NCBI GenBank assembly: GCA_038496445.1
Contig: JALMLS010000175.1
Coordinates: 124,001 to 188,000, forward strand
DNA from: Trichosphaerium sp. ATCC 40318
Lineage: Eukaryota > Protista > Tubulinea
DNA length: 64,000 nucleotides
Reading direction: 5' to 3'
The notes under the pieces are model-generated. The model made no database searches and was not told where the DNA came from. It worked only from the letters and a program-made list of their open reading frames with translations. Within the stretch, counting starts at the first letter, position 1; each line of letters begins with the position of its first letter. Positions 5,311 through 49,659 of this stretch are shown one piece after another. Position numbers and translations under genes: made by a program.

Positions 5311-6291
5311 ATGCAATGCACGCTACTAGACCTCCCACCCGAGATGCTATGCCTTATATTCAATCGCTTGAACCTAACTCGGTTTTCGGTCGCGCAAACA
5401 TGCCAACACTTAGCGCATATTATACACACCTACCTTGGGTACAAACGGGCGTATATTAGAACACCTGCGCACGTCAAGCGTATAAGTAAATTTCAAGGGA
5501 TTCTGAAAAGAACGCACGTGTTCTACCATCGAAGAGACATTCACGACGTCGTTTCGCTTATGTCAGGTGTAAGAACTATAGACTTAAAACATGCTCAAGT
5601 AACTGATGAAGGTATAAAAGCGCTGGCAGGTGTTCACACTATAGATTTGCGTTATACGCCTATTACAGATGAAGGTTTAAAGGCGTTAGCAGGTGTACAT
5701 TCGATTAATATTCAAGGATGCAAGGTGACAGACGAAGGTATTGCACCGTTAGCTGGCGTTCACACCATTTGCATTGGGTTCACTGGAGTCACTGATAAAG
5801 GTGTTAAAGCACTAAAAGGAGTTCACTCAATCAACTTGAGAAATACTCTTGTAACAAATGAAGGAATTAAAGCGCTTGCAGGAACACATACAATCAATTT
5901 ACGAGACAATAGTGCAATAACAGATGATGGTGTGCTAGCATTGAAAGGTGTTCATCGTATCAACTTGAGCGGATGTAATATCACAGGGAAATGTCTTGAT
6001 GCACTTACTGGGGTACATACAATTAATCTAAAATGGTGTGGTTCCATAACAGACAAAGATATTAAAGCGTTAGCAGGTGCACATAATGTTAATTTATACG
6101 GATGCTTTCAGGTATCCGATATTGGTGTCAAGTACCTTATTGGTGTCCATACAATAGATCTAGGTCTGACTGGAGTAACTAATGAAGGAGTGAAAGCACT
6201 CATAGGAACACACACATTGAAAGTAGCATTTACTGAAGTGACAGACGAGTGTATCAACACTTTGAAAGTACAAATTGTGTCTACCAATTAA
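5311..6291 (+). CDS. Intronless F-box plus 22-aa leucine-rich-repeat protein
   Basis: N-terminal LLDLPPEMLCLIFNRL (F-box), then about 10 repeats of GVHTIDLxxTxITDEGxKALA; 326-aa uninterrupted ORF. Confidence 0.9.
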   Translation: MQCTLLDLPPEMLCLIFNRLNLTRFSVAQTCQHLAHIIHTYLGYKRAYIRTPAHVKRISKFQGILKRTHVFYHRRDIHDVVSLMSGVRTIDLKHAQVTDEGIKALAGVHTIDLRYTPITDEGLKALAGVHSINIQGCKVTDEGIAPLAGVHTICIGFTGVTDKGVKALKGVHSINLRNTLVTNEGIKALAGTHTINLRDNSAITDDGVLALKGVHRINLSGCNITGKCLDALTGVHTINLKWCGSITDKDIKALAGAHNVNLYGCFQVSDIGVKYLIGVHTIDLGLTGVTNEGVKALIGTHTLKVAFTEVTDECINTLKVQIVSTN

Positions 6292-38015: not shown

Positions 38016-41000
38016 ATGGCAGTTCAACCTGCTCGTAGTTACGACATTACATCGCTTTCGGAGTGGAGTGTTGATGGAATTGGTATACAACCCTACTCTT
38101 CATAATTGAAAAGTTAATTCACTGACGCTGCCTCAGAGCATTTAGAATGGCGTTTTCTTGAGACTACAAACGAACAACCTCCACCAAGACACGGACACTG
38201 CGCATGCCATGTAAATGGCCAAGTCATGATATTTGGTGGTTGGGGAGGCACGCTACTGCAAAATACAAAAACTATAACCAAAATCAAAAAACAATACGTT
38301 AATTCTACTCTCTCCGCGTATTCAAGCTTAAAAAGACACTCAAAAGCCTTTTACGATATTTGGTAATTTTCTTACAATCAATAGGTCTTGTTTGGCCTGA
38401 TCTAACCTCTTTGAACCTTGGTACGGCGGATTTATACCATGATAAAACTATTACGTTTGTTTTTACAAAATTCTGGATTTTGATCCAAAAGGAGCGATAA
38501 TTTAGCTAATACAAGCAATTATAGCGACATTGGAATGGGAGAAAAAAAAGCCAACTGGAGAACCACCTGTGAGCACTTTTGCTTCTGGAGAGGTCATAAG
38601 TGACTTCATTTATGTGTTCGGAGGAGAGTCTAGCAGCGCTGTGTATACCAACACACTGACTAAATTGAATACAAGTACACCATAATAGCGATACTGTTTT
38701 TTTACATGTCTTTTTAGATACTTGGCATTGGTCAACTGTTGAGGCTACTGGACAAGGTTCTTATTTCTTAAATTTGGCGTATTTTAGTTTTATTCATTGA
38801 GAGTATAGTACCCGAACCAAGAGCATATCAAGCGAGTACTGTAGTGGCTGGAAAGTATCTTTCTTATTGTTTTTTGATGATCAATCTCTTCGGTTTTTTT
38901 TTTGATCCCTTAACAATCCTTGATTACTCATAATCGCTGGACAAGCCGATCACGATGACGATAGATGGGAGTGGTATCGCGATATACATATTTTTGATCC
39001 TAACACAGACATGTGGTAAACAATCAATATATAGCGCTTTTTTATCTCATTTTCTGCAACAAGGAAAAAAGTGCCTGCGAACAATTGGCCATCTCCACGT
39101 TCTGCACCTACAGTAAATATAGTAGGTATGCTACTACATCTAAATATATAATTTATGTATTAACGAGCTTGTACCAAAGGTACAACAGCGTACATGTTTG
39201 GTGGAGGGTCTTGGGAAGGAAACTATCGGAATATTTCTTATTACTCAGACATTTTCGCACTGGATATTTCACCTATTTGTACGTTCTCGCATTTACCTCT
39301 GTCAATCTATTTAAACTCATCAAAAATAATAGTAAGAGGTGATGTGGGATGTACGCTCTCATGGGAGAAAATAGATGCTATAGGAGACATACCATGTGCG
39401 GGTTTTTTTTGATACAATATCAGTACAGTTTCGTTTACTTTATTATTAAGCTCCACGTGCTGGCCATGCTGCTACAACTATTGGAAATTACATATTAGTT
39501 ACAGGCGGTTATATTTGTAAAGGAAGAACTTGGCCTACAATGGCAGATACTTATTTATTTGATCCCTCAGTATCGAAATGGACAAAATGTTCTGACCTGC
39601 CAAAACCGGTATGCACACATTTTCGTGTCCATCTTCTTTTTGAGTAACATGTCGGGTTTTTTGCTTAGATTGGCAATCACAAAACTATTTATAAAGACGG
39701 GAAGTTATTCTTATTTGGTGGTATCGACTACAACATTGGTAAATCAATCAAAAGAATATTTATGAGAATCTAATTTGGTTTTTTCTTTAAGATGCTGTCA
39801 GCAGTTCAAGCTATTTTATTCAATTCCCAATACGTATGTGGTGATATTTGGTTGGGCGCTGTTTATAATTCTTTAATTAGGACGTAGCTATCACCTTGCA
39901 AAGGCAATGCTTAGGCTATACAATGAAAGAGATGACCAAGAAACTCAAGTAGAATTAGACGATGGAAATATTTTGAAGTATCATAAATTTATAATGGTAG
40001 CACGTGCTCCAAAATGTCTTACTGAGATTGAAAAAAATGGCAAACTCATAAACGTATCTAGAAATACGTTCAATATTTTTTTGGGTTGGATGTATTGCGA
40101 TCAAATTCCACAAAGCCTTCAACTCAATGAAATCATTGAGTTGATAGATTTTTTCATTCGGACTCAAGTTAACAAAAATGTCGTTCTCTATACAGTAGAA
40201 CGTCTATTTAAGTACTTCCCTATGCAATTACATGAAGTAAAGAAAGTATTAAAAGTAGCTGAAAAATGGCCTGAAGATATTTATCATCAACTCATTAAAA
40301 AGATAAAGGAAGGAAATCATAAAGAAAGTACAAGAATTATAAATTGGATAGTCGAACATAGTAAAAAACAAGACATCAAGTCAATTGTTTCTACAGATCC
40401 ACCATTATGGTCATCTTGTGGTGTTTTAGATACACTTGGATATGATATGGATATTATATGGGATAATCATGATACAGCTGATTTTACACTTGTTCTTGGT
40501 GAACAAAAGATAAAATGTCATAAATCAATGTTATCTAGTAGGTGCAGCTACTTTGACGCTATCTTAAGGTCTGGTATGAGAGAAGCTCAGAATCGTAAGT
40601 CCTTAGTTCGTATAGCACGTGATTTTTGTTGATTATGGTTATAGGCGAGTTGGCGTTACCTGAAGGTCAAGAGGAACATGGAATGACGTATACGTCATTG
40701 TAAGTCATATGGTTTTTTTTTTGTTCATTCTTAAAATATTCTTTCATTCAGGTGTGGATTGATTAGGTACTTTTATTCTGGAAGTGTTGATCACCTTGAA
40801 GACCCTTTTGATTGTCTTATGATAATGTCATACAGTGGCTATCTTGATCTTGCATTCTCAGAAGACCACAAAGTACTCATGGACCACTGTAAAGCAAAGT
40901 GAGTATTTAAGATTTTTTCCTGTTCATGAAACTAAATAGGTTTTAGGATGAAAGATTTATCACCACAAGCTTGTGTAAAGTTACTCAGTTGTATGAGGCA

Positions 41001-45947: not shown

Positions 45948-47306
45948 ATGAGCGTTTTGCTCAAAATGAAGATATCTCTTGTTAAACCTTGTGTTAGGCC
46001 ATTGGAATTGCTTTCTTTACCTACTGAGATAATATTTTGTATATTGTCTTTATTGGGTAGACATTGCCGTATATCTGCTACGTTTGTTTGTAAATTCTTC
46101 TCTACAATCATTCTACACCATTTGGGATATTATGAGATCAACTTGAGCAATACAAGCGATCTACCAAAACTCAAAGGAAGTCCATTGCTTAAAAATACAA
46201 CAATATCTTTAAACGTCGAAAATTTTACGCTCACCGAGGATGACTATAAAAATATCTCTGGAGTACATAGCCTATACATAAGTGGAGATACTATATTAAC
46301 AGATACAAAATTACAACACTTATCAGGAGTGCATAGCCTGGAACTACGTATATCAAAGAGTAAATCCAACTTGACAAATGTTGGATTTAAATCACTTTGT
46401 GGGATCCATACATTAGACTTATCCTGGGGGCTTTTTAAAGAAGAATGGCTTGAAGAACTTGGTACTGTTCATACAATCAAGCTTGTCGGTACCAATATAA
46501 CAGATAAAGGACTTGCATTACTCTCTGGAGTTCGCAGTATTGATTTATCAGATTGCAAGCAAATTACTGATAATGGTGTCATTACCATTTCACGTGATAT
46601 AAATAAAATACAGCTTGAAGGCTGTGATATTACAGATAAAAGTGTAAAAGCACTAACAAATGCAAGTTTTATATCTTTGATTGGCTGCAAGAAAATTACT
46701 GATGAAGGAGTAAAGTACTTATTATCACAAAATCAAAAAACAAAGAAAATTAAAAAAATTGCTCTTGATTGGTGTAGGCAAATATCAAATGATGTTTTGA
46801 AGCTGTTGGCCGGTATACCTTGTATAGAACTTCTTGATTGTGAGCAATTGACTGATGAAACTCTATCACATTTATTAGGTGCATATCACATAGACTTAGG
46901 AAATTGCACGTCTTTAACAAATGATGGGATAAAACAACTTGCAGGTGTTAAATTAATTGATATTTCAAGTCTGGATGTTGATGATACTACGTTAAAGGCA
47001 CTTGCTGGAGTTCACACAATTATACTTGATAGAACACACATAACAGACAAAGGACTTGGTTATTTAATTGGAGTTAAAGTAATCAGCCTTGAGGCTTGTA
47101 GGAGCATAAGTGACAAAGGTGTTAGTAGTCTTGTTGGTGTTAACGCAATTTCTGTAGATGGTTGCTCACAAATCACTGACAGAAGCATTGAAAATTTGAA
47201 AAGTCTTCATTACATTCAATACCATGCCACTCAAATTACAAAAAGAATGGTTGATAAGATATTATTCCAATCACATGGAGAAAAGCGATTGTGGCCTGAG
47301 TTTTAG
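45948..47306 (+). CDS. Intronless F-box plus LRR protein, paralogue of 5311-6291
   Basis: LLSLPTEIIFCILSLL F-box; GVHT/S.L...ITDKG...L repeats; shares the post-F-box II..(Y/H)LGY segment with the first copy. Confidence 0.9.
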   Translation: MSVLLKMKISLVKPCVRPLELLSLPTEIIFCILSLLGRHCRISATFVCKFFSTIILHHLGYYEINLSNTSDLPKLKGSPLLKNTTISLNVENFTLTEDDYKNISGVHSLYISGDTILTDTKLQHLSGVHSLELRISKSKSNLTNVGFKSLCGIHTLDLSWGLFKEEWLEELGTVHTIKLVGTNITDKGLALLSGVRSIDLSDCKQITDNGVITISRDINKIQLEGCDITDKSVKALTNASFISLIGCKKITDEGVKYLLSQNQKTKKIKKIALDWCRQISNDVLKLLAGIPCIELLDCEQLTDETLSHLLGAYHIDLGNCTSLTNDGIKQLAGVKLIDISSLDVDDTTLKALAGVHTIILDRTHITDKGLGYLIGVKVISLEACRSISDKGVSSLVGVNAISVDGCSQITDRSIENLKSLHYIQYHATQITKRMVDKILFQSHGEKRLWPEF

Positions 47307-47522
47307 ATATGCCTTAACATTAATAAAACTTGTGTTTTCATTCTGCTAATACATTCTACTGTGAACGTTCACACTTGTACGATATCGATAATAAACACGC
47401 TCTGTCTCTCCAAAAAACAGCTACTAATTTTTTCTTTGTCTGAATCAAAGTTTAAAGCACGAAGTGGATTATTACAAAAAAAACCTTGTTTTACATTCTT
47501 TTTTTTTTCTTACTTATTCTTC

Positions 47523-49503
47523 TTAATTCACAACTATAGGTCTTTGACCAACACCTGAAGGCTGTACAACTATTTTACCATTTAAAACAGATACCTTAAC
47601 TTGTTGATTTGGGTTTATTTTACCTAGAAACTAAAGTAAGCAACAAAAGGGAGAAAAAAAATAACAGTGCTGGACTGTTACACGTACCACTTAATTGAGC
47701 TTCAGCCAACTCACTAACAACCAATTTTTCAACTGCATTCTTCAGTGAACGAACACCATAAGCCTCATTATAAAACTTAACAAGCCAGGAGACTAGTCCT
47801 GCATCCCACTGCAACGTCTACAAAAATAATTAACTACAAAAGGAACAAAGAGACACTACTATGCGTACAATATTATGTTTTGCTAAAGCTCTTGCACGCC
47901 ATTTAATTAGAATCTTAGATATTATAGTACCAACCTCGACACTTCAAAGAAACAAGGTTTAGGACATTGGAACTTTAGTAAACGGATGGCGTACGGTTTT
48001 AGAGGTAGGAATGGTACAATCTCTCCTATACGACCTATGAACTCGTCTCGTTTAAAGGCTTCTTTAAGAGGTGCGTGTAGAGCAGATGCAAGTTCTTCAT
48101 CCAGTTTTACTTGTTGTTGCTTAGTGAGAGACCTTTGAAGAGATCTAACGTAGTGGTTTAGTACTAAAGCAAGTATCTTGTTTACTTTACCTAATTTGAT
48201 AATGTTCTTTAATGACATCTGATGCCACATTTGATGTCATAACGAATATAGCTATACAAGTAAGCGTAAAGAAACAAACACAACAGCGCGTAGCGGGAAG
48301 TTTTAGTTAAGTTACCTTCTTTGCAGTTTAAGGTTTCACCTTTCCCTGTTGTGAGACGCCCTTCATCAAAAAGTTGCAATAAAATTGTAAGAACATCTGG
48401 ATGTGCTTTTTCAACCTCATCTGATACAATTGTAAGCGAAAGGCTAAGCTAAAACAACATACCAAGTAAAATAATAGGATTTTGCACTTTCTTTAACGAT
48501 AACACCAATAATGTGTCCTCTGCATAGCCCAAGTACCCAGGTGGGGCACCAACCTATAAATACGTAAATTTAAAGCAAAAGTAAACAAGGAGGTAGTCAG
48601 TTGACGCTTGCTCTACGTACAAATTTATTTACTGCGTTCTTCTCCTGGTACTCAGACATATCTATTCTTACAAATCCAGATGGATCATCGCCATAAAGCA
48701 TATTCGCAACTACTTTAGCCATCTTTACAAAAAAAATATGTCAACTTTTTTCAAAAGGTGTCAGAAGTTACCTCTGTTTTACCAACACCTGATGGACCTG
48801 AAAAGAGCCAAACGATGGGTCTGTCTTCATCTGTCCATCCAGATTGTAACCTCCTTATAGCCTTGCAAACTGATGTTACCGCAAAGCTCTGACCAACAAT
48901 TGTTTCTCTGATTAGTTGCTCAACGTTTCGCGCGATTTGCTTCCTTGGTAGTAGGCGTGCTTCCTCTATTGGCTTATCGCCGCCTTCTGTATTGCTTGCA
49001 CCAGCTGCGCCACTGTTTCCATTTGAGCTTCCACTAGCTTTGAACACGTTTAGAATCATATTCTAATAGTACACTAAAGATGTACCTTGCAACTGTGGCT
49101 TTAGAACAAGTGGTTTTAACGTTTCTGCTCTTGCTATGTACTAGAAAAAATATTAGTTACCGTGGACGCACAGATAACGAACCGTTGTGATGCGCTGTTT
49201 GATTGTTTTTTGTAACTATAACAATTATTAGTCGTTTTAACCGCCAAATACCTGAGCTTGTACCTCAGCGTTTTTCTCATCTACGTAATGGCGTCAGAAA
49301 CAGAAGTGTAAAGTGTAATTTGAGAGGTTAATATTTTGCCTCCTAAGTTTTTAGGATAACTAACACGTACATTTTAAGCCCGTTTGAAGGTATTCAATGC
49401 CATGAAGATAATTTTGAAACGCATTTGGGTAATCACCACTCTCATCCGCTGCACACGCCACTTTTATAAGCGCGATGCCCTTGTCGATAAATTGTTTAGA
49501 CAT
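47523..49503 (-). CDS. MIT domain fused to Skd3/CLPB-type (ClpB NBD2) AAA+ ATPase
   Basis: MIT: [53 protein letters not shown]; AAA: [13 protein letters not shown]...[92 protein letters not shown]. Confidence 0.88.
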
Positions 49504-49659
49504 TTGAGCGGGTTTTACGCTGTGTTTTAAAAAAAGAGCCTCGGTGATGCCCCTATTCAAAGACTGTGATGTCCTTGACACGAAAACTACCAAGCCGACT
49601 TAACTGGTTTATACGCCGTTTTTTTTATTCTCGTGCGCTATTTGTTACAGCAAGCAAGT

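Follow-up and report, generated by a model that had tools for sequence, protein, structure and literature searches.

A stretch of 64,000 nucleotides (nt) from Trichosphaerium sp. ATCC 40318 (contig JALMLS010000175.1, positions 124,001 to 188,000), referred to here in its full length as the window, carries a gene in which an MIT domain of the Vps4 type is fused to an AAA+ motor of the Skd3/CLPB type. The gene lies on the minus strand at positions 49503-47523 of the window, and its 13 exons make up a coding sequence of 1314 nt that specifies a protein of 438 amino acids (aa). There is hardly any doubt that this is a real and expressed gene, and that the MIT domain and the Skd3-type AAA+ module are parts of one protein. 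When the whole protein was compared with Pfam, the MIT family (PF04212) matched residues 6-70 with 64.3 bits (cut-off 30) over profile positions 1-65 of 66. This match is followed by AAA_2 (149.1 bits, residues 154-329) and ClpB_D2-small (43.4 bits, residues 340-416), and the classic AAA family, PF00004, reached only 39 bits as against the 149 bits of AAA_2. No Pfam match to ankyrin-family domains, to Vps4_C or to Clp_N was obtained in the 438-aa protein, which has a single nucleotide-binding domain (NBD); ankyrin-Skd3 proteins that were scanned in the same manner match the ankyrin families strongly. This set of domains, with MIT, AAA_2 and ClpB_D2-small present and ankyrin repeats absent, is the one that had been expected in an earlier note made from the DNA sequence of the window alone.

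The polypeptide consists of four parts. The MIT bundle occupies aa 1-77 and is joined by a disordered linker of some 28 residues, in which Gly, Ser and Asn are abundant, to an AAA+ module of the HCLR clade, which is followed by a ClpB_D2-small lid. A single-sequence AlphaFold prediction was good for the MIT domain but poor for the AAA module, and the prediction was therefore repeated with an alignment of 64 rows. The alignment-based model has a mean predicted local distance difference test score (pLDDT) of 89.6, with the AAA+ fold and its lid well defined. The MIT domain is modelled as an antiparallel three-helix bundle (helices at residues 2-22, 25-45 and 49-82) with pLDDT of 92-97, and the linker is predicted to be disordered at aa 82-99, where pLDDT falls below 50.

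Gene structure and transcript evidence

Contigs assembled from four public RNA runs (X1-X4) of three studies were aligned to positions 47450-49650 of the window, and all 12 exon junctions of the gene are present in the spliced contigs among them. Each of the 12 introns is of the GT..AG type, with lengths of 42-90 nt. One contig from X3 extends from the 3' untranslated region (UTR) into a 33-nt exon, and one from X1 leads from exon 4 back to exon 1; because these two contigs overlap, the MIT and AAA+ coding regions must lie on one message. When the largest exon was searched against 1.84 billion representative proteins, it retrieved a protein of 438 aa (P0001) that is identical to the spliced translation, residue for residue. 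It is encoded on a JGI transcript contig of 1422 nt (L001), which holds the complete open reading frame (ORF) for MIT and AAA+ and is colinear with the full set of 13 exons over 49570-47484. The gene is single-copy within the 64-kb window.

It had been claimed in the earlier note that the two domains belong to one transcript and not to separate genes, and the spliced contigs and L001 bear this out. An origin of the fusion as an artefact, whether from two adjacent genes, from a chimeric assembly or from a decaying pseudogene, has a vanishingly small probability. The independent spliced contigs of three studies span the junctions, L001 carries the complete ORF, that ORF is uninterrupted with its motifs intact, and the same fusion occurs in other organisms, genomic contigs included; together, the contigs, L001 and the occurrence elsewhere rule out such an artefact. 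The exon joins that had been drawn from the DNA alone fared less uniformly. The start codon (ATG at 49503) and the stop codon (TAA at 47525-47523) are the limits that had been given for the gene, but the exon set was incorrect, as the 33-nt exon completing MIT helix 3 had been missed and there are 13 exons in total. A sequence-only gene model joining 49252 to 49140, similar to the join in the earlier note, was replaced, since the RNA contigs show a 17-nt and a 33-nt exon in its stead; neither had been predicted, and with both included the MIT domain reaches its full length.

The first four exons encode the MIT domain, all exons of the gene being read from the minus strand. Exon 1 (49371-49503) holds the start codon and MIT helices 1 and 2 (aa 1-44), and on its own it matches the Pfam MIT family with 36.8 bits; its junction to the next exon (49371|49280) is found in contigs of X1 and X2. 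Exon 2 (49264-49280) is a micro-exon of 17 nt (Y-EKNAE) that follows a phase-1 intron inside a Tyr codon. It is bordered by introns of 90 nt and 48 nt within the MIT coding region, and its 15 non-ambiguous bases sit between the flanking exons in the RNA contigs. Exon 3 (49183-49215), the 33-nt exon, encodes 11 residues at the start of MIT helix 3; it is supported by the joints 49140|49183 and 49217|49371 in X1, X2 and X3, and L001 maps here as well. The end of MIT helix 3 (YIARAETLK, including I63) and the start of the linker are encoded by exon 4 (49086-49140).

The remainder of the linker, rich in Gly, Ser and Asn, occupies exon 5 (48772-49037) to about position 48961, and is followed in the same exon by the N-terminal part of the NBD with the Walker A motif GPSGVGKT (48798-48775), which contains K166. 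Exon 6 (48621-48722) continues the NBD, within AAA_2. Exon 7 (48463-48553) encodes the pore loop GAPPGYLGY (48550-48524), whose Tyr209 lies at 48535-48533, together with the first part of Walker B, and exon 8 (48316-48420) supplies the Walker B residues D233 and E234 (DEVEK) along with a 10-residue segment, and matches AAA_2 with 38.6 bits by itself. Sensor-1 (TSN), with N275 at 48231-48229, is encoded by exon 9 (48191-48251). Exon 10 (47995-48144) contains a short insertion of the Skd3 type and a 10-residue segment with the Arg finger R326 (48032-48030). The ClpB_D2-small domain starts in exon 11 (47869-47941) and extends into exon 12 (47688-47817), which carries sensor-2 (YGVRS) with R385 at 47751-47749 and alone matches ClpB_D2-small with 24 bits. 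Exon 13 (47523-47623) encodes a C-terminal beta-hairpin tail and the TAA stop codon, beyond which the 3'UTR runs to about 47484.

L001 and the window differ at a few places in the 5'UTR (L001 1-66 against window 49504-49570), with 98.5% identity over the first 200 nt and an identical translation of the coding sequence. Upstream of the start codon, L001 has an in-frame TGA where the window has CGA. These 5'UTR differences suggest a different strain or sequencing errors. Run X2 also contains contigs that are 90-95% like the window at 48146-48194 and 48422-48775. These contigs have non-canonical joints (AA..TA, GA..TC) and a much greater depth, and they continue into unlike sequence; a related Clp-type gene, or a different organism present in the sample, is their probable source. 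Among the neighbouring features of the window are two long, intron-less ORFs on the plus strand, at 45948-47306 and 5311-6291, which encode proteins with F-box and LRR_6 domains. The former is convergent with the MIT-Skd3 gene at the 3' end of the latter, the two stop codons lying about 215 nt apart. Another plus-strand ORF, at 39907-40632, encodes a BTB domain.

A Vps4-type MIT domain on a Skd3-type motor

The MIT domain is of the Vps4 type. When aa 1-80 were compared with the sequences of the PDB, the 15 best matches were all Vps4, with yeast Vps4 first (E 1.2e-11), and MITD1, calpain-7 and katanin ranked far behind. The alignment to the yeast Vps4 MIT domain is gapless, with aa 4-71 set against residues 5-72. 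The best structural match of the modelled domain is likewise a yeast protein, the Vps4 MIT-Vps2 complex (2v6x_A; Z 13.7, 1.5 Å, 77 of 82 residues), and this is followed by MITD1, VPS4B, archaeal Vps4 and VPS4A-CHMP1A. The score against the MIT hidden Markov model and the Vps4-like fold of the model agree with the N-terminal three-helix bundle that had been proposed from the sequence. A word-indexed search with the MIT domain alone (aa 1-80) returned only the query among 49 candidates, a result that reflects the index and carries no information on rarity.

The motor is of the Skd3 type by sequence, structure and phylogeny. The exon that holds Walker A (exon 5) has human CLPB/Skd3 as its best phmmer match in the PDB (7.8e-12), ahead of ClpC and ClpB, and the best database relatives are ankyrin-Skd3/CLPB proteins, found in animals, in a choanoflagellate and in early-diverging fungi, whose NBDs are 43-49% identical to that of the window protein. 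In a Foldseek search with the AAA module, ranks 1-18 were all human Skd3 (E to 1e-34, target-normalised TM to 0.87), followed by ClpC and ClpB; Vps4 is absent among the 50 structural matches listed, which comprise Skd3, ClpB and ClpC only. The catalytic elements K166, Y209, D233/E234, N275, R326 and R385 are intact and aligned with those of Skd3 and ClpB. The module also carries three Skd3-specific signatures that lack a counterpart in ClpB, namely a GW.DE motif ahead of Walker A, the motif F(K/R)RDEF.GRI, which is longer by one residue, and an insertion downstream of sensor-1. A profile built from the NBDs of the MIT-bearing family scores 370-392 bits on Skd3 proteins versus about 240 on ClpB. 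All motifs named in the earlier note, including Walker A, the pore loop, Walker B and WD...YN..YG.RS.K, were found in the protein, and sequence, Foldseek and a maximum-likelihood (ML) tree concur with its assignment of the module to the Skd3/CLPB-type Hsp100 proteins. A divergent Vps4, a true ClpB/Hsp78 and a torsin were considered as other identities of the protein and were excluded by Pfam and structure; the Torsin family reached 21.9 bits, below its cut-off of 27.

The protein shares features with three well-known AAA+ systems, and each of them differs from it in a defined manner. Skd3, the human CLPB or ANKCLP, is a disaggregase of the mitochondrial intermembrane space that likewise consists of a single HCLR-clade NBD with a D2-small lid, and the likeness includes the level of identity given above, the GW.DE and RDEF.GRI motifs, the insertion after sensor-1, the catalytic residues (which match K387, Y430 and E455 of Skd3) and a grouping of the NBDs against ClpB with support of 100/99. 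In contrast to Skd3, the window protein lacks ankyrin repeats, a mitochondrial targeting signal and the hydrophobic peptide that PARL cleaves, and has the MIT domain and a flexible linker in their place. Its Walker A motif, GPSGVGKT, is ClpB-like and differs from the GSSG(I/V)GKT of Skd3, and in the tree the protein falls outside the clade of ankyrin-bearing sequences. Since it has neither the ankyrin repeats nor the targeting signal, the window protein is not a Skd3 in the strict sense.

Vps4 (SKD1), the ATPase of ESCRT-III disassembly, resembles the window protein in having an N-terminal MIT domain, a flexible linker and one ring-forming AAA+ module, and is of about the same size (438 aa for the window protein); its MIT domain is the closest in both sequence and structure, and a hydrophobic residue (I63) occupies the site at which Vps4 contacts the type 1 MIT-interacting motif (MIM1). 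The motor belongs to another AAA+ clade, however, with AAA_2 as the best match, a ClpB_D2-small lid and no Vps4_C, and the residue at the MIM2 site is not conserved. The window protein is thus not a Vps4, because its motor stems from a different clade. Compared with ClpB, Hsp104 and Hsp78, the NBD and lid are homologous to NBD2 and D2-small, and the pore-loop, Walker, sensor and Arg-finger motifs are common to both. Unlike these proteins, the window protein has one NBD and lacks Clp_N, NBD1 and the middle domain, and therefore lacks the element that couples to Hsp70; with its single NBD it is not a ClpB or Hsp104.

A Skd3-type NBD would also be expected of a mitochondrial Skd3 orthologue whose N-terminus has diverged and is merely MIT-like. 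Such an origin is highly improbable. Inspection of the sequence and the model revealed neither a presequence nor a hydrophobic autoinhibitory peptide at the N-terminus, and since MIT helix 1 starts at residue 2-6 there is no space for an N-terminal extension. The match to MIT is strong in sequence and in structure alike, and the ankyrin-Skd3 proteins form a separate clade (100/99) that includes two other amoebozoan sequences.

Relatives and the history of the fusion

The fusion of MIT to a Skd3-type motor appears to be rare, with a handful of relatives, and uncharacterised in the literature found. The same combination of MIT, AAA_2 and D2-small occurs in a protein of 476 aa from Echinamoeba exundans (P0152; EukProt EP01122), which is 43% identical to the window protein end to end, and in a protein from a soil metatranscriptome that is also 476 aa long (P0304). 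The MIT domains of these two relatives score 52.5 and 68.8 bits in Pfam. Genomic metagenome contigs carry the fusion as well, three of them (L003-L005) about 90% identical to Echinamoeba and one (L006) at 72%. None of these relatives has a protein name, and none comes from NCBI or UniProt. Between lineages, identity amounts to 36-40% in the MIT domain, 52-61% in the NBD and 12-27% in the linker, which is the pattern expected of two constrained domains joined by a tether. The intron that interrupts the Tyr codon of the (K/R)-Y-E-K motif of MIT in phase 1 is common to the window gene, L003 and L006, and this common position supports the view that the fused gene arose only once.

Full-text literature searches found no description of an MIT-Clp fusion, though a silent InterPro entry is possible, and two papers on the evolution of Skd3 do not mention the MIT form (PMC4339202, PMC7343390). 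A feature search of the ESM Atlas gave generic AAA_2 clusters only, all below 0.9. The few relatives and the lack of a description in the literature searched are in keeping with the earlier suggestion that the architecture is neither common nor characterised. A Skd3-like protein of 493 aa from MetaClust (P0151) has the segment comprising pre-Walker A and Walker A three times, near verbatim, before a normal NBD; this repeat is probably an artefact of assembly or of the gene model.

In an ML tree of 37 NBDs, the MIT-bearing and ankyrin-bearing proteins stand jointly apart from the ClpB-like outgroup (100/99). The ankyrin-bearing proteins form a clade (100/99), and the three MIT-bearing proteins form one group (87/66) outside it. 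Forcing this trio together with the two amoebozoan ankyrin sequences cost 18 log-likelihood units (approximately unbiased (AU) test, p = 0.024). A recent derivation of the MIT form from amoebozoan ankyrin-Skd3 is thus disfavoured by the AU test, subject to the caveat of long branches. The MIT family sits on such branches (the end branch of the window protein measures 2.17), and for this reason its exact placement is uncertain. The tree points to the MIT-bearing proteins as a sister lineage of ankyrin-Skd3, with the exact position uncertain. Domain shuffling, which had been inferred in the earlier note, is upheld as far as the fusion itself is concerned; the MIT form appears as a sister lineage of ankyrin-Skd3 and not as its recent derivative, so that the exchange may have run in either direction.

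The origin of Skd3/ANKCLP has been placed in stem holozoans or choanoflagellates (PMC4339202, PMC7343390). Two amoebozoan transcriptome sets, those of Copromyxa protea and Rhizamoeba saxonica, were found here to contain ankyrin-Skd3 (P0271 and P0257, EukProt), for which contamination is possible, and further ankyrin-Skd3 proteins occur in Rozella, Zoopagomycota and Mucoromycota (NCBI; P0269, P0173, P0247, P0274, P0295, P0301). The two amoebozoan sequences lie at the base of the ankyrin clade (100/99). An ankyrin-Skd3 attributed to the euglenid Rhabdomonas costata (P0282, EukProt) falls next to holozoan sequences in the tree, for which prey contamination or gene transfer seems likelier than vertical descent.

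A candidate unfoldase proposed to dock through MIT

The reading proposed for the protein is that of a cytosolic unfoldase which docks through its MIT domain and is targeted to ESCRT-III-type proteins, and we regard it as about evenly balanced between right and wrong. The protein would be cytosolic, because the folded MIT domain from residue 2-6 leaves no room for a presequence. Its MIT domain would dock on MIM-type helices, most likely on MIM1-type tails of ESCRT-III-family proteins, and clustering on a MIM-bearing polymer would raise the local concentration and so allow the NBDs to join in a closed hexamer. The polypeptide on which the protein has docked would then be threaded through the Tyr pore loops, and the subunit thereby unfolded and extracted. 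In effect, the design of Vps4 would be realised on a motor of the Clp/Hsp100 type in place of a classic-clade AAA motor. Ring assembly of Vps4 is generally described to proceed through clustering on ESCRT-III. The isolated NBD of Skd3 has no ATPase or disaggregase activity, and its N-terminal domain is needed in cis (PMC7343390), probably for the formation of hexamers. Since the Skd3 NBD is inactive without its N-terminal domain, clustering of the MIT domain on an array of MIMs is proposed to drive assembly of the ring in the window protein.

The residues at the two known binding sites of MIT allow docking to be considered further. In yeast Vps4, binding of MIM1 is lost with the substitution L64D, and that of MIM2 is disrupted by I18D (PMC3987140). 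Residue I63 of the window protein aligns with L64 of yeast Vps4 at the MIM1 site, and each of the three full-length members of the family (the window protein, P0152 and P0304) has Ile here, such that a MIM1-type groove is plausible from the sequences. Certain points, however, weigh against docking on ESCRT-III. At the MIM2 site, I18 of yeast Vps4 is replaced by C17, and by T or R in the relatives P0152 and P0304; MIM2-type binding is accordingly doubtful, and without conservation of this residue at most one of the two binding modes of Vps4 is clearly kept. MIT domains of other proteins bind partners outside ESCRT-III, and the long branches of the family, noted above, count on the same side.

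In a different account, the protein would still be a targeted unfoldase, but the partner of its MIT domain would be something other than canonical ESCRT-III, such as lineage-specific MIM-bearing fusions (chimeras with Ist1 or ESCRT-III domains), cytoskeletal proteins or autophagy factors. This is a possible explanation, though we would not expect it to prove correct. Folds near to that of the MIT domain include those of MITD1, katanin p60, ULK3, calpain-7, spastin, NRBF2 and chitin synthase, the partners of which are varied, and the lack of conservation at the MIM2 site fits as well. Nevertheless, the MIT sequence is closest to Vps4 itself and not to the divergent MIT families, the hydrophobic residue at the MIM1 site is kept, and several of the alternative partners are themselves of the ESCRT-III family, so that this account overlaps with docking on ESCRT-III-type proteins.

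The intact motifs of the motor would also suit a general, stand-alone disaggregase of the cytosol in which MIT merely replaces the ankyrin repeats as a module for assembly or substrate contact, without specific docking. Such a role is unlikely. The MIT signature is kept, at 52-69 bits, in three lineages whose identity in this domain is no more than 36-40%, and its retention across such diverged lineages indicates that a specific binding surface is under selection. The flexible and non-conserved linker, moreover, suits a tethered docking domain.

The specificity of AAA+ unfoldases is generally attributed to exchangeable N-terminal domains, and in the protein described here an MIT domain as in Vps4, the best-understood targeting domain of its clade, is found on a motor of another clade, the Skd3/Hsp100 type. 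Through this pairing, a motor of the disaggregase type may be directed at ESCRT-III or at proteins like it. The pairing raises the questions of whether docking on a polymer can substitute for ankyrin repeats in activating a Skd3-type ring, and of whether a motor other than that of Vps4 can remodel ESCRT-III-type polymers. The family is known so far from obscure amoebae and environmental sequence only, and to the history of Skd3 it adds a sister lineage with an MIT head, alongside the ankyrin-Skd3 proteins of amoebozoan transcriptome sets and early-diverging fungi. As a tentative extension of MIT-directed docking, the family might represent a second, independently built motor for the disassembly of ESCRT-III or ESCRT-III-like polymers, a natural analogue of Vps4 whose hexamers assemble when triggered on MIM arrays. 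If this is true, the Skd3-type single-NBD motor would predate the opisthokonts and would have been fitted with interchangeable heads, MIT for polymers of the cytosol and ankyrin repeats for mitochondria.

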